IMG/VR virus record: IMGVR_UViG_3300028676_000005
Location: 124,001 to 188,000 of that record
DNA length: 64,000 nucleotides
Strand: one strand, 5' to 3'
Shown here piece by piece: positions 8,927-51,721 of this stretch; within the stretch, counting starts at the first letter, position 1, and each line of letters opens with the position of its first letter. The notes under the pieces are model-generated. The model had not been told where the DNA came from and did no database searches. It saw nothing but the letters and a program-made list of their open reading frames with translations. The position numbers were made by a program, and so were the translations under genes.

Positions 8927-9304
8927 TTAACCTTGAAAAAACTCGGTACGGAGAAGCTCGTTAAATTGGTCCACAAGGTCATGGATAAGCTGACTGTCCA
9001 AAATAGCTGGGGGATTGTCAGGGTTATGCAGACCCATGTACTTAGCACCAACAAAGATTTCTGGATTCGTATTTGGATCCATTTCTTTGTAGATGTTTAC
9101 GTTGTAGCCAACTACCATCTGGTTCTCAAAAGCAAGACCAAGATAGTAGTCACCAATTGCAATACGGTTAGGAAACTTGATGCGTTCAAACTGAGGGTGA
9201 TCTTCATGGTCTTTTACAAAAGCATTTACTGCTTCTGCTTTAGCCATAGTCTTCTCATAAATAGGAACAACCCGCACGCAATGTTCACATTGATTACAGG
9301 TCAT
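8927..9304 (-). CDS. hypothetical protein with N-terminal CxxCxxC
   Basis: ATGA overlap with upstream gene. Confidence 0.7.
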   Translation of the reverse strand: MTCNQCEHCVRVVPIYEKTMAKAEAVNAFVKDHEDHPQFERIKFPNRIAIGDYYLGLAFENQMVVGYNVNIYKEMDPNTNPEIFVGAKYMGLHNPDNPPAILDSQLIHDLVDQFNELLRTEFFQG

Positions 9305-9774
9305 TTTTTTCTTACCGCCTCAACTTCAAAGTTTACAAACTTCCTGGCTTGGGCCTGTTCCCAGTTACGACGGTCATCAGCAATGCTACCAAAGCTGCGA
9401 CCACGAGGTGGTTGTTCAGTGTTAGGTACAGCCCAACCAGGCGGTGCGTCTCCACCCAGACCTTCTGATAACTTGAGTTTGTACTCATCGGAGATCTGGA
9501 TCATGCGATTTACCCAATCTTTAAAAATTGGCCTGAAGCATGCCAATTCAACAGCCGAGTCAAAATGAGTCGCTGTCTGACTAATCCTGATCCGACGGTT
9601 ACCCAGGTTTTTTACATAAACTGCAATTTCTTGATGGTCAGTTTTCCAATCACAAAGAACAAACAATACATCGCCGTTTTCAGGATCTGTTGAAAATGTT
9701 GGGAGACCAACAAGAGATCTGATAACATTAAACCCATCACGCAATACCGCCAGATCCGGATTTGCATTTTTCAT
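9301..9774 (-). CDS. hypothetical protein (157 aa)
   Basis: ORF in operon. Confidence 0.7.
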   Translation of the reverse strand: MKNANPDLAVLRDGFNVIRSLVGLPTFSTDPENGDVLFVLCDWKTDHQEIAVYVKNLGNRRIRISQTATHFDSAVELACFRPIFKDWVNRMIQISDEYKLKLSEGLGGDAPPGWAVPNTEQPPRGRSFGSIADDRRNWEQAQARKFVNFEVEAVRKK

Positions 9775-37155: not shown

Positions 37156-39444
37156 CTAGTTACCATCCTTCTTAGGAGGAGTCTGTTTAGCCAACACTCC
37201 GTAATAAGTTTTAGGGAGGTTAAACGTGTCATCAGGCGGCGTCAACAACCCGTAGTAAGTCCTTGGGATGTAGAACGTATCGTCAGGTGTGCCCAAAATG
37301 CCGTAATACGTGTCAGGTATTATGAAGTAGTTAATTGGGTCGTCATTACCAATAGAACGGATGTACGAGTTATCTTGAACCTTAACAGTGTATTCAAAAG
37401 AGTGCTTGAACTTGTCAACACTCTTAATGAAGTTGTTATCTTTCAGCTTGATGGTCGAAGCCATGTCCGCTTCAATAGTAGGCCTATCTGGAAACAAAAA
37501 GGCCAATACAGATTCAAGTTCTCGGATACCGTCCATGTTGGATTGGACGTTAAGCATCACGTTTCCAAAGTCAGCATCAAGACTATTGCCAGGGCCTGTC
37601 AGTTTACTGTCACCAACTGACACTTCGTTTGGAAGTTCGGTAACACCGATCTCATCAGCCATCTCTTTAATGAAATGGATGGTGTACGAAGAGAGCCGAG
37701 ACATGATATCGATAAGGTCGCTTTGCTTGACCCGCATGTTTGGTTGGATATTGGTATCCCAGCCAGTCACACGTTTAAAGATATCCCAGGCAAACGTTTT
37801 GCACTCAGCCGCTGAGTAGTCAGAGAAGTCCAGGTTGTAATCACGCAACAACAGATCGTACTTGGTATATTCGCCAAGCTTAACGAAACCTGAATCGTAA
37901 ACTGTCTTAGTGGCGTTTTTAACTCGAGCACGTTTATTCAGATCGTAAAACTGACTGTACATCTTCTTGTGTTTCCACATCGCCTCATAAACCTCAAAGG
38001 CGTACTGGACAAGATAGTCAGGGGCTACAAAGTTAGCAACTGGAAACCAAATGTTGCGGATATCGTAGGCAAGGTATTCGGGGTAAATAAAGTTCTTACC
38101 GCCAGCCTCATAGACGTCTGCAAGACTAGGTGGCTTAATTCGCATCACGTTCTGGTAATAAACTGGACCAATGTCAACAGGGTGGAACCCATTGCTATAA
38201 TCGACCAGATACCGCCAAATGTGATACGCATCGGCAACTGTCATCTTGATTTGTTTGCCAGTCTTTGGATCAGACACGACAACACGACCAGTGAACTTGT
38301 TATTGCCAACCAGATAGATCCATTCGTTATACACAACAGACATCAAAGTATCAGCATGGCGGTTGGTGTAGTCACGCATGCTAGATTCTAAGACTTTAGT
38401 AGGTAGTTCCGAGTGAAGACTGTACTTACCACGTTCTAAGGCGTCCTGTTGATAGATGGCCGTTTGATCGTAGTTGTCCCTGGCTAACAACTGCTGTTTA
38501 AGAATAATCTGTTCAGTGGTGTTGTAGGTGGGTTCCCGGCCGTAGTCCTCAATGAGATTAAGGTTAAGACGGCGATACAACGGAGTTGGACTAAGATCTT
38601 CCAGCTGCGTTGCGGTACCTTCCACCATGTCAAACTTAGCCAGCGGAATATTTGCAATAGTCAGCAAATTCTCCATCAGCTTATTAAACGTCAACGTCTG
38701 CCCGGGGTTATTCTTAATCCAGGCAATGTTACGAAACAACCACATGGTTTGTTCGCGGTTAAGACTATTTTTATATTTGGAGAAATCCCCGTAGGAATCA
38801 ATGTGGCTCCAGATATAAAAGTCATGACTGTGCCGAGTGTACATGTCTTCAATGCGAATTGTGTGAATTGCTTTGATGACGTCAGCCATAAGCAAACGGC
38901 TCATGGTAGGGAGAAACAAGTTATCCGTACCGATATATTCGTTGTTAAAAAGCTGACTGACTTCAGACTTAATAAAGTTTTGAAGCTTTGGAATTAACTG
39001 GTCCTCGTTCCACAATACTAACTTTTCATTGTACCGAAGAATCTTATAGTCATCGGCGGGAATCGTTTCCGCATAAGGGATCGGGGAGAGTATGCCGCGT
39101 ATCAGTGTTGGTTGAGCTGGATAACGTTCGGTAAGCCGTTTAAACCAATAACCGCCCTTAGCGTATTCACGGAAAGTAATCAGGTGAACACGCAGGTTCT
39201 CTTTGTTAAAGACGATTTCTTCGTCGTTATCCAGAGAGTTAACGGTCATTGGTACGTCGGTCTCATGATAGTCCCCGTTAAGGTTCATGTAGTACCGCCA
39301 AGTAGCTTTATCTTCTTTTACAATATAACCCACACGCTCTAGGGCCTGGTTATATCGTTTTGCTAACGCCTCATTTTTGATAACCATGGTTCTTGCAAGG
39401 GAAAAGATGTCCCTGAAGTACCTGTCTTTATCAGCATTATTCAT
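37156..39444 (-). CDS. baseplate wedge-type virion protein (phiKZ gp128-like) with three C-terminal TYYG repeats
   Basis: WRYY.NLNGDYH..D, HSHDF, TKVLES, LSSYT; divergent from portal. Confidence 0.7.
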   Translation of the reverse strand: MNNADKDRYFRDIFSLARTMVIKNEALAKRYNQALERVGYIVKEDKATWRYYMNLNGDYHETDVPMTVNSLDNDEEIVFNKENLRVHLITFREYAKGGYWFKRLTERYPAQPTLIRGILSPIPYAETIPADDYKILRYNEKLVLWNEDQLIPKLQNFIKSEVSQLFNNEYIGTDNLFLPTMSRLLMADVIKAIHTIRIEDMYTRHSHDFYIWSHIDSYGDFSKYKNSLNREQTMWLFRNIAWIKNNPGQTLTFNKLMENLLTIANIPLAKFDMVEGTATQLEDLSPTPLYRRLNLNLIEDYGREPTYNTTEQIILKQQLLARDNYDQTAIYQQDALERGKYSLHSELPTKVLESSMRDYTNRHADTLMSVVYNEWIYLVGNNKFTGRVVVSDPKTGKQIKMTVADAYHIWRYLVDYSNGFHPVDIGPVYYQNVMRIKPPSLADVYEAGGKNFIYPEYLAYDIRNIWFPVANFVAPDYLVQYAFEVYEAMWKHKKMYSQFYDLNKRARVKNATKTVYDSGFVKLGEYTKYDLLLRDYNLDFSDYSAAECKTFAWDIFKRVTGWDTNIQPNMRVKQSDLIDIMSRLSSYTIHFIKEMADEIGVTELPNEVSVGDSKLTGPGNSLDADFGNVMLNVQSNMDGIRELESVLAFLFPDRPTIEADMASTIKLKDNNFIKSVDKFKHSFEYTVKVQDNSYIRSIGNDDPINYFIIPDTYYGILGTPDDTFYIPRTYYGLLTPPDDTFNLPKTYYGVLAKQTPPKKDGN
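37192..37326 (-). repeat. three copies of a 17-aa-period motif
   Basis: FIIPDTYYGIL / FYIPRTYYGLL / FNLPKTYYGVL. Confidence 0.95.
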
Positions 39445-48155: not shown

Positions 48156-49292
48156 TCAGGAGAAGAGGAGTTTAAATCCTGTCAAGAATATACCGACCAG
48201 GCTACCTACGCCTTTAAGTAGCTCACCCCAGCCACTCAGGTTATTATGCTTCCTGGTATGATCAAGGGTAACTTTGGCATAGAACTCTTTATTACGCATT
48301 TCAAATTTATTGCGATCTGCTTCTTCTTTGCTGCTAATTTCCGAGCGAGAAGACTTATGAGCCGCAGCAGCTGCGTCCATTCTTAGTTTCTCTAATGCGT
48401 TCTTGTGATCTTGTTTCATGAACGTCATTTGGGTATTAGCTTCGTCTAGTTGTCTCTCCAGCTTGGACAGTTTAGCTTGTGCTTCACGCAACTCTTCAGA
48501 CTTGCGCTCTAGCGCTTTAGAGATGTCCTTCAACTTGCCTTCAGCTTCAACATACCGTTCGGTGTTACCACCTTTAGTAGCCTCAGCCTTGTTCATGAAC
48601 ACGCCAAGCTTTTCGAGGGACTCTTTGTCCAAGCCATCGAAACTGTAAAATAGAATATCTGGTGAAGTATTACCGCTGTCAACTCCAACGTAGAGTCCGG
48701 CGTTAGTACCCGCGTCATGTTCTACTGGCACTTCAGTAGCCTTACCGCCCAGGTTTACGTAATACGGATGTTGCGTTCTACCCGGATCATTTACATAAAC
48801 ACAGTAATATGCCATGCGACGTTTGCCGGTTGAATCTTTTAACGCAGTAAGGACATCCCCAATTGTTGCTTTTGGAACATTCATAGGACTTCTGGAAAGA
48901 TAGCCGCTTCCACGATATAAAGTCATACCTAGCATTTCACTGTGAATGTATCCACCGTCTTCTGCTAAGTCTCCTGTTAACTTAACGTAGATTACCATGT
49001 TCATTGGCATGGTAGGAAAATAGGAGGCTCCCCGCCCCTTCTCTTCTTCCAGCTTTCCTTTGAATGCTTCCATCACATATTTGTCAAACTTTGTTGTTGC
49101 CTGGTCTGGATCAAATTCAATGCAGGTTGGAATAACCCCATTCATCCTGAGAACGACGACATCGCCAGTTGGAGAGTAATCAGCTTCTTTACGACGCTTG
49201 ATAATGTAACTCAATCCACCTTTTATCTTTACGACAATGTCACTCGAAGAAGATCCATTAATAACTTCGCGCTCCAGCTTGAAACTATTCAT
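48156..49292 (-). CDS. core hypothetical protein with coiled coil and hydrophobic C-terminus
   Basis: 378 aa between MCP and nvRNAP genes. Confidence 0.65.
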   Translation of the reverse strand: MNSFKLEREVINGSSSSDIVVKIKGGLSYIIKRRKEADYSPTGDVVVLRMNGVIPTCIEFDPDQATTKFDKYVMEAFKGKLEEEKGRGASYFPTMPMNMVIYVKLTGDLAEDGGYIHSEMLGMTLYRGSGYLSRSPMNVPKATIGDVLTALKDSTGKRRMAYYCVYVNDPGRTQHPYYVNLGGKATEVPVEHDAGTNAGLYVGVDSGNTSPDILFYSFDGLDKESLEKLGVFMNKAEATKGGNTERYVEAEGKLKDISKALERKSEELREAQAKLSKLERQLDEANTQMTFMKQDHKNALEKLRMDAAAAAHKSSRSEISSKEEADRNKFEMRNKEFYAKVTLDHTRKHNNLSGWGELLKGVGSLVGIFLTGFKLLFS

Positions 49293-49326
49293 ATTCCAAA
49301 CTACCTTTATTAGTATGTCCTACCTT

Positions 49327-49344
49327 GATAATTTAGGTTTGAAA
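49327..49344 (-). promoter_or_regulatory. degenerate early/middle promoter
   Basis: Minus strand TTTCAAACCTAAATTATC resembles the TATATTAC element. Confidence 0.45.
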
Positions 49345-49361
49345 TATTCTTTGTGATTAGC

Positions 49362-49416
49362 AAAATGCAAAAAAAAGGAATCAACTACCCCACTCCCTTT
49401 TAAAGGAGTGAGGTAG
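49362..49416 (-). terminator. MCP transcript terminator
   Basis: CTACC.CACTCC / GGAGTG.GGTAG stem followed by T8 tract. Confidence 0.75.
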
Positions 49417-49445
49417 AAGAGACCAGATGCAACTAACCTAAACGC

Positions 49446-49535
49446 GCCTCATCGACAGTGTCAAGAGGGGTACTAGGCAGGCCCCTCTAACAGACCGTAG
49501 TAGGTCGATGGAAGGATGAGGCCTACGGGTTTCCC
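49446..49535 (-). other. putative -1 programmed ribosomal frameshift cassette
   Basis: G_GGA_AAC at 49535-49529 in frame; 6-nt spacer; paired segments GCCUCAUC/GAUGAGGC and AGAGGGG/CCCCUCU; -1 frame stops at 49473-49475. Confidence 0.8.
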
Positions 49536-51721
49536 GCTTCGATGGCGCCTTGGATGCCAGCCAGAGCTGGAGCCAGACCTTCGATGGCGATGCGCTGTTT
49601 TGCCAGCTTGGTCAGCAGACCGTTATCACCCAGGAACTCTGCGGCGTCAGTGATCTTCAGCGAACCGATGATCGGGTTGAGCGCCCAGTGTTTGTAGGTA
49701 GGGATGGTCATGACCACACCGAAGTCCTGCTGATCACGAGTCACGTTACCTTGTACAACGATGTTCTCTTTCGAGACAACGACGCCGACACCGCCCAGTG
49801 GGTTGATGTAATCGGAAGTCGAATCGTTTTGGGTAACGATCAGGATCTCACCGATCTGGCTGTCGAAGTTGGTTTCGACGGCTTTCATGGTGGTCAGAGG
49901 ACCCAGGGTACGAGCGTCGCCCAGACGGAGCAGGAAGCGGCACAGGTTCTGGTGAGCGATGATGTTCCACTTCGGAGAAGTAGCACCGCCGTATTCGGCG
50001 ATCGCGGCGATACCGGACTTGGTAGTCAGGGCCGAAACGATGTCGCTGATTTCGTTGGTGAACACGGCGCAGACTGCTTCCAGCACACCGGTGCTGTCTT
50101 GGGTCGATACGACGTCGGCCAGGGTGATCTTGCGGTTTACTGCGGCAGCTTGCACGTAGTGCATGCCTGGCAGGACGTTGGAACCCTGGTTGTTCGAGAC
50201 CACAGCATGGCCGTCGATGGAGGTGATGTACGCCAGGTGCTCAGCAGCCATGTCGAACGCTTTACGCGAGCACTGGTTGTTGATCGCCACCGACATTTGC
50301 TCGATCGCGTAGTCCAGGGAGCCCTGGTTCACGTCTTGCTTGTCGATTGGGTATTTCACAGACACCGGGTCGCCACGTTTGACGGACAGGTGCTTGTCGG
50401 CATCGAACACTTCGATACGGTAGCCGAAGTTACCGCGCGAGTTGTTGGTCACGTTACCGGTGATTTCGATACCGGATACGGAACCGTTGGTCAGGGTGCG
50501 GAACAGTGATTTCTGAGCGTCATCAGCGCGATCACGAGTGATCACGTTACCGGTTGGGATGTGCTGGAGAGCAGTGATCGAAACCTGGCCGCCGTTCAGG
50601 CGCATGACGTTCTTTTGACGCTGGTAGTTGCCGTCCATCGACACGTCCAGCAGAGGGCGGTAGCCAGCTGCTTTCAGATCGGCGAACAGGGTCTCACCAA
50701 CTTCCAGGCCGTCTTTGTCCTGTACAGCAAAACCGTTGTGACGGTTCAGCAGGATGGCCATTTTGCGGTCATCGGACGATTGGCCGTTCGAAGTCGGGAT
50801 GAAGGTGTTGTTCGACATCGCCTTGGTGTTGATGAAGAACGTCTTGACAGTGCCCTTGATAGTAGCGGTCAATTGCAGAGTCTGACCGGTGAGCGAGTTG
50901 GACTCGATCTCGTCGGTAGCGGTGTACGGACGCTGGCCAGGGGTTTCGCACAGGCCCAGGAAGTTCGGAATGACGCTCGGAACTTTCAGGAAGCTGGTCA
51001 GGTGGTTTTCGCGGCCCAGGGCATCAGCTTCCATGTAGGTAGCGGTCCATGGGGTACGGTCGGCGGCTGGAACGAACAGCTCGCGGGTGTCGTCGGTGTC
51101 CGACTCAGGGTACACAGGGTGTACAGCCAGGGCGGATTCGGCGAACATTTTGCCGGAACGCAGCAGACCGAAGATCGGTTGCAGTTCGGAGGCGGACTGC
51201 CAGGCGCTGTTGCCGTAAGCGTAAGTACCCAGACCAGCGGCACGAACCTTCATCAGGACGCCTTCGTCTTCGTAACGAACGGTCAGGGTGGCGAACAGTG
51301 CTTCGGCGCCAGGAGTCTGCAAGTGGCTCTGGGCGTTGAGGGCCATGTTCAGAGCTTTGACGGTGGTTTCCGAGCCTTCCCAGTTCTGCATCGAGAAGCC
51401 TTCCAGGCCATCGACGGTACCGTAGAAGCTTTCGGTACGTTCAACGATGTCTTTCAGCTCGCTCGGAGCAATGTTGGTGGTACGGCCGAACGAGGATTGG
51501 AACGCGGCGAAGTTCTTGTCGTTCAGACGAGTGGCCAGCATGCCATTCAGCGATTGGCTCTCAGCGCCTTGAACACGAGCCAGGTCGAACTTGCTCGAGA
51601 AGCCAGAAAAGTTTTCCTGGCCTTGCACCGCGGTCAACGATTCGTTCTTCAGTGCATCAGCGATCAGCTGAACAAGGTTACCCTCGTTCTTGAGACCCAT
51701 CTTAATCTGTTTGTAAGCCAT
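49523..51721 (-). CDS. major capsid protein (phiKZ gp120-like)
   Basis: 732 aa; strongest codon bias; N-terminal G-x-E processing sites; Q...AEALF.T, TNNSRG motifs; synteny with helicase. Confidence 0.85.
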   Translation of the reverse strand: MAYKQIKMGLKNEGNLVQLIADALKNESLTAVQGQENFSGFSSKFDLARVQGAESQSLNGMLATRLNDKNFAAFQSSFGRTTNIAPSELKDIVERTESFYGTVDGLEGFSMQNWEGSETTVKALNMALNAQSHLQTPGAEALFATLTVRYEDEGVLMKVRAAGLGTYAYGNSAWQSASELQPIFGLLRSGKMFAESALAVHPVYPESDTDDTRELFVPAADRTPWTATYMEADALGRENHLTSFLKVPSVIPNFLGLCETPGQRPYTATDEIESNSLTGQTLQLTATIKGTVKTFFINTKAMSNNTFIPTSNGQSSDDRKMAILLNRHNGFAVQDKDGLEVGETLFADLKAAGYRPLLDVSMDGNYQRQKNVMRLNGGQVSITALQHIPTGNVITRDRADDAQKSLFRTLTNGSVSGIEITGNVTNNSRGNFGYRIEVFDADKHLSVKRGDPVSVKYPIDKQDVNQGSLDYAIEQMSVAINNQCSRKAFDMAAEHLAYITSIDGHAVVSNNQGSNVLPGMHYVQAAAVNRKITLADVVSTQDSTGVLEAVCAVFTNEISDIVSALTTKSGIAAIAEYGGATSPKWNIIAHQNLCRFLLRLGDARTLGPLTTMKAVETNFDSQIGEILIVTQNDSTSDYINPLGGVGVVVSKENIVVQGNVTRDQQDFGVVMTIPTYKHWALNPIIGSLKITDAAEFLGDNGLLTKLAKQRIAIEGLAPALAGIQGAIEAGNP

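Follow-up and report, generated by a model that had tools for sequence, protein, structure and literature searches.

The major capsid protein gene and its 3′ end

The window analysed here is a 64,000-nt stretch of the virus record IMGVR_UViG_3300028676_000005 (229,429 bp), positions 124,001–188,000, and it is part of a phiKZ-like jumbo phage. Near-identical sequence occurs in peat and lake-water DNA runs and in wastewater RNA-seq contigs. The open reading frame at 49523..51721 on the minus strand encodes a 732-aa phiKZ-type major capsid protein (MCP) (PF25620 PhiKZ_MCP, E-value = 1.7e-129; phrog_3231, E-value = 4.1e-161; PDB 8y6v gp120, E-value = 1.3e-5). Its neighbours are typical of phiKZ-like jumbo phages. 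The nearest named phages are EL-like Pseudomonas phages, Erwinia phage RisingSun and Shewanella phage FishSpeaker, at about 60% MCP identity. No tRNA or tmRNA gene is present in the window.

The gene ends ...GCG GGA AAC CCG TAG. The features of the region, all on the minus strand, are the following.

49523..51721, MCP gene, 0 frame, 732 aa, ending ...A G N P stop (TAG at 49525–49523)
49529..49535, slippery heptamer G_GGA_AAC in X_XXY_YYZ register; a second in-register heptamer, A_AAC_CCG, overlaps it at 49526–49532
49523..49528, 6-nt spacer CCGUAG, containing the 0-frame stop
49473..49535, −1-frame reading from the heptamer, GKPVGLILPSTYYGLLEGPA and then a stop (TAG at 49475–49473); it gives a net 17 residues beyond the 0-frame end and carries the motif LPSTYYGLL
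49515..49522, 5′ arm of the predicted basal stem, GCCUCAUC
49446..49453, 3′ arm of the predicted basal stem, GAUGAGGC, non-coding
49493..49506, small predicted side hairpin in the three-way junction, GACC / loop UACUAC / GGUC; the loop and 3′ arm encode the conserved Y-Y-G
49459..49492, predicted apical stem-loop, core AGAGGGG (49488–49482) / CCCCUCU (49470–49464), enclosing the −1 stop
49369..49416, separate terminator-like hairpin, stem 49416–49403 / 49398–49385, followed by U8 at 49376–49369, which marks the end of the unit
37156..37330, C-terminal tail of the baseplate-wedge protein (gp128 homologue, open reading frame 37156..39444), with three tandem copies of the motif: IPDTYYGIL, IPRTYYGLL and LPKTYYGVL

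The initial annotation described four inverted pairs after the slippery site, and its observation holds: all four are in the sequence exactly as given. These are 49515–49522/49446–49453 (GCCUCAUC/GAUGAGGC, 8 bp), 49504–49510/49450–49456 (CAUCGAC/GUCGAUG, 7 bp), 49482–49488/49464–49470 (AGAGGGG/CCCCUCU, 7 bp) and 49523–49528/49495–49500 (CCGUAG/CUACGG, 6 bp).

The RNA was folded as a ribosome on the heptamer would leave it exposed, i.e. from 6 nt after the heptamer (49522 to 49440, 83 nt). The result is a 77-nt branched hairpin with an MFE of −32.6 kcal/mol (z = −3.95), and 1 of 200 dinucleotide shuffles folds as well. The 8-bp pair forms the basal stem with a probability of about 1.0. The 7-bp pair around the −1 stop forms the apical stem, with a probability ≥0.99 for six of its seven pairs and 0.53 for the outermost. 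When upstream sequence is included, however, RNAfold gives a different MFE structure, and the basal stem probability falls to about 0.6. The 7-bp pair that competes for the 3′ arm has a probability of 0.00 in every context folded. The 6-bp pair is not in the MFE and lies in the spacer, which a ribosome on the heptamer would cover. Two of the four pairs therefore make up the element and two look incidental.

The element is distinct from the terminator-like hairpin further downstream, as the initial annotation stated. That hairpin has an MFE of −28.5 kcal/mol (z = −6.74). A simple terminator scan of 49250–49600 found nothing; the downstream hairpin was not called because its U run starts 8 nt after the stem. 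No U tract follows 49446, and the element does not have the form of an intrinsic terminator. An Rfam scan of 48800–50000 at permissive E-values gave best hits of E ≥ 1.3, far below the gathering scores. None lies within 49446–49528; the nearest end at 49427 or begin at 49647.

Shift site, −1-frame peptide and hairpin in related phages

A scan of viral contigs with an alignment of MCP C-termini gave 41 loci. A scan of genome contigs for MCP relatives found none, and a metagenome scan added only one new relative. Together with the isolate genomes, which include phages EL, RisingSun, FishSpeaker and PQ1, about 33 distinct sequences could be compared, with MCP C-termini 52%–98% identical.

An in-register heptamer equivalent to G_GGA_AAC occurs in 29 of 33 relatives, 0–3 codons before the 0-frame stop. 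It is C_CCA_AAC in most; C_CCA_AAU, A_AAA_AAC and G_GGA_AAC also occur. One subgroup has A_AAC_CCG or A_ACC_CCG directly before the stop. The A_ACC_CCG of four relatives (L011, L028, L033 and L058 in the numbering of the loci) is not a canonical heptamer.

In every relative the −1 frame across the MCP stop encodes a short conserved peptide. It is GKPVGLILPSTYYGLLEGPA in the window, PKRRSVSPANYGRLEYPELP in EL, PKRLIPSTNYGRLG in RisingSun and PKSINPYYYGNLGTDV... in FishSpeaker. YG.L is invariant, the consensus over the longer stretch is pK..[li][ps].t.YG.L, and the core may be written [IL]-[PS]-x-T-x-Y-G-x-L, or in short [IL]P.T.YG.L. Variable sites in the −1 frame fall 22/18/39 at codon positions 1/2/3, and there are 28 synonymous-only codon columns against 21 that change an amino acid. 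The YG.L residues are kept with varying codons (UAC/UAU and GGU/GGG/GGA/GGC). EL and PQ1 differ by three substitutions in the extension, all synonymous. Contigs of close relatives in public runs show only four kinds of change in the element: UAC>UAU and UUA>CUA (both synonymous), UAC>UUU (Y>F, seen in other lineages) and CUG>CAG (the free position of YG.L). The variants are thus synonymous or within the variation the motif allows. The heptamer and the stems show no change although the flanks differ at dozens of sites, and no run shows an indel at the heptamer. In a diverged relative seen in one of these runs (X17; 39 differences in 801 nt), no substitution falls in the heptamer or the stems.

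In 8 relatives a −1-frame stop abuts the heptamer, so that the frame can be entered only within 10–13 nt; the entry window is ≤21 nt in 14 of 33. In 25 of 33 there is no ATG, GTG or TTG in the −1 open reading frame before the motif, and an independent small open reading frame was rejected for this reason. Transcriptional slippage was rejected because most sites have only three A's. Assembly error was rejected because the same arrangement occurs in about 33 distinct sequences from isolate genomes and metagenome assemblies, without an indel at the heptamer in any run.

Each relative folds into a 52–77-nt hairpin of −18 to −43 kcal/mol. Spacer lengths across the 33 relatives are 5 nt in 9, 6 nt in 14, 7 nt in 6, 8 nt in 2, 9 nt in 1 and 10 nt in 1; thus the first pair lies 5–7 nt after the shift site in 29 of 33. 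The −1 stop lies inside the hairpin, after the motif, in all 33. A fixed 80-nt stretch from +5 has a mean z of −3.24, with 27 of 33 below −2, whereas coding control stretches from the same loci average −0.23. Six relatives (L041–43, L047, L048 and L055) have only weak predicted structure, with z above −2. In the subgroup with A_AAC_CCG or A_ACC_CCG, whose shift site lies 3 nt further downstream, the stem also starts 3 nt further downstream, so the spacer stays at 6 nt.

The basal arms differ completely between lineages. The 5′ and 3′ arms are GCCUCAUC and GAUGAGGC in the window, UCCCUUCAACC and GGUUGAAGGGA in RisingSun, CCGUGAG and CUCACGG in EL, and ACCCUUAUUAC and GUAAUAAGGGU in FishSpeaker; by eye there are about 14 different arm sequences. 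The 3′ arm of the window is identical in the 98%-identical relative L002, although the flanks differ, and is unchanged in the X17 relative.

Covariation in relatives had been proposed in the initial annotation as a check on the structure, and the comparison supports maintenance of the stems. In a cross-pairing test of each 5′ arm, the sequence's own 3′ region ranks first among 23–32 unrelated partners in 17 of 33, with a mean z of −2.2. A close subgroup keeps 21 of its 23 consensus pairs in every sequence, with only one-sided compatible changes; the other two pairs are U-U in one sequence. In a more divergent subgroup the apical stem shows two-sided changes. A MAFFT alignment of 32 divergent elements aligned the coding 5′ half but not the 3′ arms, and RNAalifold on a divergent subgroup therefore missed the basal stem; there is no formal per-column count for this stem, and per-sequence folding, fixed-window z-scores and the cross-pairing test were used instead. 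The stems overlap the −1 coding sequence on their 5′ side, so some conservation there serves both purposes. At the small side hairpin, conservation is explained by the peptide, because codon third positions vary.

The signal is absent from more distant MCP relatives (≤49% identity): Klebsiella phages Miami and phiKp_32, Vibrio and Photobacterium phages, Aeromonas phage AhC3_1, Shewanella phage SXP01, Pantoea phage Survivor and Pseudomonas phage OBP. In most of these a terminator hairpin follows the stop closely. The signal is therefore a trait of one clade.

Other occurrences of the C-terminal motif

A motif search of all six reading frames of the whole genome found the motif in only a few other places, and all are at the C-terminal ends of real open reading frames. 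Three tandem copies end the 762-aa protein at 37156..39444 (minus strand). This protein is the homologue of phiKZ gp128 (PDB 9xqs_C PHIKZ128, E-value = 5.9e-79), which is a baseplate-wedge protein in phiKZ (PMC13250141). One copy ends a 198-aa protein at genome positions 106522–107118 (minus strand). It belongs to phrog_18233, which shares an N-terminal domain with phrog_21620, a family annotated as "virion structural protein".

The same pattern holds in other genomes. The motif ends the gp128 homologue in EL, RisingSun and seven metagenomic genomes, and phrog_18233-family proteins in EL, RisingSun, FishSpeaker and five metagenomic genomes. Flanking residues match within a genome. In EL, for example, the MCP extension has SPANYGRLEYPELP, gp104 has DPANYGRL and LPETNYGRLVFKEL, and the small protein has IPETDYGRLEFKEI. 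Summed identity is 48 within genomes against 37.7 between genomes (permutation p = 0.002, not corrected for phylogeny). The gp128 homologues of pTD1 and OBP, which lack the frameshift signal, lack the motif. That of Klebsiella phage YC1 has only a partial SSSYGLL; the MCP end of YC1 itself was not read, but its 49%-identical relatives Miami and phiKp_32 lack the signal.

A PDB sequence search with the ~200-aa protein found nothing. An AlphaFold model of the 198-aa protein (pLDDT 88.6) has as its only notable PDB match a chain of the phiKZ outer baseplate (Foldseek E-value = 0.04; VIA-align Z = 6.2 over 127 of 150 residues), which is a weak lead. A complex prediction of the ~200-aa protein with the 20-aa extension gave no answer and counts neither for nor against binding. 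The motif resembles the sortase motif LPxTG, but this reading was rejected: the spacing differs (T-x-Y-G), there is no following membrane anchor, and the known hosts are Gram-negative. The phiKZ prohead-protease site (S/A/G-X-E) does not fit the motif.

Interpretation and comparison with known frameshift signals

The region is very probably a −1 programmed ribosomal frameshift (PRF) signal at the 3′ end of the MCP gene of an EL/RisingSun-clade jumbo phage, and confidence in this explanation is high. In this view most ribosomes read ...GGA AAC CCG and stop at TAG, giving the 732-aa MCP. A fraction, with P and A sites on G_GGA_AAC, would be held up by the 77-nt branched hairpin, whose basal helix starts 6 nt downstream at the mRNA entry channel. 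These would slip back one base, read GGG AAA CCC GUA ... through the hairpin and terminate at the −1 stop in the apical loop. The product would be MCP with ...AGNP replaced by ...AGKPVGLILPSTYYGLLEGPA. What the comparison of relatives shows is conservation of the shift site, the spacing, the hairpin and the coding character of the −1 frame; that the hairpin is the stimulator, and that the product is a minority species, is inferred. There is no direct evidence of the trans-frame protein, from proteomics, ribosome profiling or a reporter assay, and dependence of shifting on the heptamer and the structure was not assayed. X_XXA_AAC is a weaker shift site in E. coli than X_XXA_AAG.

The reading in the initial annotation is thus partly supported. 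Its core inference, a frameshift stimulator after the MCP slippery site, has strong comparative support, but its suggestion of a pseudoknot or switch does not. That the element sets the tagged fraction is a reasonable inference, although efficiency was not measured.

An alternative is that the extension is translated but the hairpin is mainly an mRNA 3′-end element (stability, processing or termination of the very abundant MCP transcript), slippage depending on the heptamer and the nearby stop codon alone. The hairpin does sit in the 3′ region of a highly expressed gene, just upstream of a second strong hairpin. The six relatives with weak predicted structure keep the heptamer and the peptide, and many relatives have a CCN codon before the stop, which could allow P-site slippage at a slow stop codon. 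This appears unlikely, since a stability element has no reason to keep the spacing seen in 29 of 33 relatives or to move by 3 nt with the site. In addition, no U tract follows the hairpin, and a separate terminator-like hairpin lies downstream.

A pseudoknot, or a two-state switch tuning the fraction of extended MCP, is less likely still. The 3′ arm GUCGAUGAGGC can pair with either GCCUCAUC or CAUCGAC, and upstream sequence changes the MFE. However, the alternative pair has zero predicted probability and arises from a local CAUC repeat. The folds of relatives with a different sequence here show no obvious counterpart, as judged by eye and not tested formally; the two closest relatives are identical over this stretch. 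Pairing between the hairpin interior and the 35 nt downstream is no better than with other phages' sequences (mean z = +0.10, 0 of 33 below −2), a weakly negative result as folding was not pseudoknot-aware.

The absence of any recoding, with a purely RNA element or a coincidental heptamer, is very improbable: although 3 of 297 long open reading frames in this genome have an in-frame heptamer in their last 6 codons and the product has not been seen, the third-position bias, the varying YG.L codons, the placement of the −1 stop after the motif and the occurrence of the motif in ordinary open reading frames of the same genomes argue against it.

The signal works like that of phage T7/T3 gene 10, where a −1 frameshift near the end of the major capsid gene gives a less abundant, C-terminally extended protein (10A and 10B; PMC5592923). 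It does not belong to that lineage, as the MCP families are unrelated. The T7 extension is about 53 aa and 10B is non-essential; here the extension is 11–19 aa and carries a short motif shared with baseplate proteins. T7 uses G_GUU_UUC with distant 3′ sequence, so the shift site and RNA element also differ. E. coli dnaX, IS911 and IS3 family signals likewise have an X_XXY_YYZ heptamer, a short spacer and a downstream stem-loop, and IS911 uses a branched three-way-junction structure like the fold predicted here. In the present case the A-site codon is AAC or AAU rather than AAG, the 0-frame stop lies inside the spacer, and the whole −1 extension is encoded within the hairpin. An upstream Shine-Dalgarno-like enhancer was not sought. 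The G/GT frameshift of the tail assembly chaperone in long-tailed phages is also a conserved PRF in a structural-gene module that sets the ratio of a short and a long product, but the gene and role differ, and the long form adds a whole domain rather than a short linear motif.

In phiKZ the C-terminal arms of gp120, which is of the same MCP family, form a six-helix bundle around a ~9 Å pore at each hexamer centre, and at pentons they bind the vertex protein gp244 (PMC11297242). This places the extension at capsomer centres. The alignment to gp120 ends near residue 706 of the 732-aa protein, at residue 742 of 747 in gp120; this clade's MCP therefore has a longer 0-frame tail plus the frameshift extension. 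The end of the phiKZ gene was not examined.

A further inference, which has not been shown, is that [IL]P.T.YG.L is a short docking peptide, displayed at capsomer centres for the same partner that the baseplate proteins bind. In its fullest form this proposal is possible but doubtful. The frameshift would exist to place a sub-stoichiometric peptide at hexamer centres. The same peptide ends the baseplate-wedge protein (1–3 tandem copies) and several small proteins that are probably baseplate-periphery proteins, so that one partner, e.g. a fibre or adaptor protein, would be recruited to both baseplate and head. Six C-termini converge on a narrow pore, so only a minority of subunits could carry the extension, and PRF efficiency would set that number. 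This would be a recoding-controlled short-linear-motif network in virion assembly.

Full-text searches found no paper describing a frameshift in EL-like or other chimallivirus capsid genes, and the shared motif is apparently unreported as well. Current annotations of EL, RisingSun, FishSpeaker and the metagenomic relatives list only the 0-frame MCP (the records read here were those of the three named phages). A second, extended capsid protein would change how their virion proteomes and cryo-EM maps are read, and would add a well-supported bacterial-virus case to the few known capsid-gene frameshifts. The signal is compact: heptamer, 6-nt spacer and a hairpin of about 60–77 nt contain the entire extension open reading frame, and the many natural variants of the stem make it a convenient system for the study of hairpin-stimulated −1 PRF in Pseudomonas and related hosts. 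The C-terminal motif shared by MCP, baseplate wedge and small virion proteins suggests a common docking partner, and gives a directly testable lead to an unknown interaction in jumbo-phage assembly or host attachment.

Proteins ending in the motif of the proposed MCP extension, or in a similar sequence

Window 37156-37330, minus strand: C-terminus of the ORF 37156..39444, the baseplate-wedge protein (phiKZ gp128 homologue).
G000:C1:106522-107118, minus strand, in the same genome but outside the window (L128:2025-2618:-): a 198-aa phrog_18233 protein.
RisingSun NC_042018.1 120461-121009 (L111:2261-2806): an RNase H (PF00075).

The baseplate-wedge protein ends in three tandem copies of the motif carried by the MCP -1 extension, i.e. 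IPDTYYGIL, IPRTYYGLL and LPKTYYGVL. The copy number is 0-3 in relatives, and two genomes (those of the relatives L021 and L040) lack the tail altogether. The 198-aa protein ends in EIPDTDYGQLAGAEPVA. Its paralogues in related genomes end either in this motif or in a different repeat, HDGTY.HDGT.TY. An AlphaFold model of the protein shows a weak resemblance to a chain of the phiKZ outer baseplate (9xqd_0, Z 6.2). The RNase H of RisingSun displays a motif-like C-terminus, ...TDTDYGYLK, which may be due to chance, on a protein that is not obviously structural.

Sequences flanking the probable frameshift element

Window 49547-49589, minus strand: MCP C-terminal tail in the 0 frame, just upstream of the heptamer.
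Window 49369-49416, minus strand: strong hairpin after the frameshift element.
Window 49328-49340, minus strand: motif AAACCTAAATTAT, upstream of the next gene (ATG 49292-49290).

The 0-frame tail is a variable stretch. Both the relative L002 and the relative found in the sequencing run X17 carry many substitutions there, and X17 also has a +1/-1 indel pair at 49547/49553. The following ~120 nt, however, are almost invariant.

The hairpin has a predicted folding energy of -28.5 kcal/mol (z -6.7). Its stem sequence, CUACC.CACUCC...GGAGUG.GGUAG, is nearly the same in EL, RisingSun and the relatives L003 and L011, and this is unusual for a terminator. The U8 run starts 8 nt after the stem, and thus the hairpin is not called by a simple terminator scan. 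The motif upstream of the next gene is conserved as AAACCTA[AC]ATTAT in EL, RisingSun, L003 and L011, and in EL it coincides with a feature annotated as a “putative phage promoter”.

Other heptamers, MCP ends without the probable frameshift, and occurrence of the phage

Window about 9310 (genome 133310), minus strand: A_AAA_AAA near the end of the ORF 9301..9774(-).
Genome 114622, minus strand: A_AAA_AAC in a 315-aa ORF outside the window.

These two other long open reading frames have an in-register heptamer (conservation and structure were not examined) within their last six codons.

Relatives without the frameshift (L012-L017, i.e. Klebsiella phages Miami and phiKp_32, and Vibrio and Photobacterium phages) end their MCP in the 0 frame with G[KQ]LP-stop. 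The nt sequence (GGT AAA CTA CC) resembles the -1 reading GGG AAA CTG... of phages of the type of the relative L049 (GKLIILPST...). This may represent a remnant of the extension or a coincidence.

Near-identical phage sequence is found (runs X1-X20) in peat and lake-water DNA metagenomes and in wastewater RNA-seq contigs. It is also present in a 2023 run labelled with a single organism (coded “organism A”), which might point to a host or an enrichment culture.
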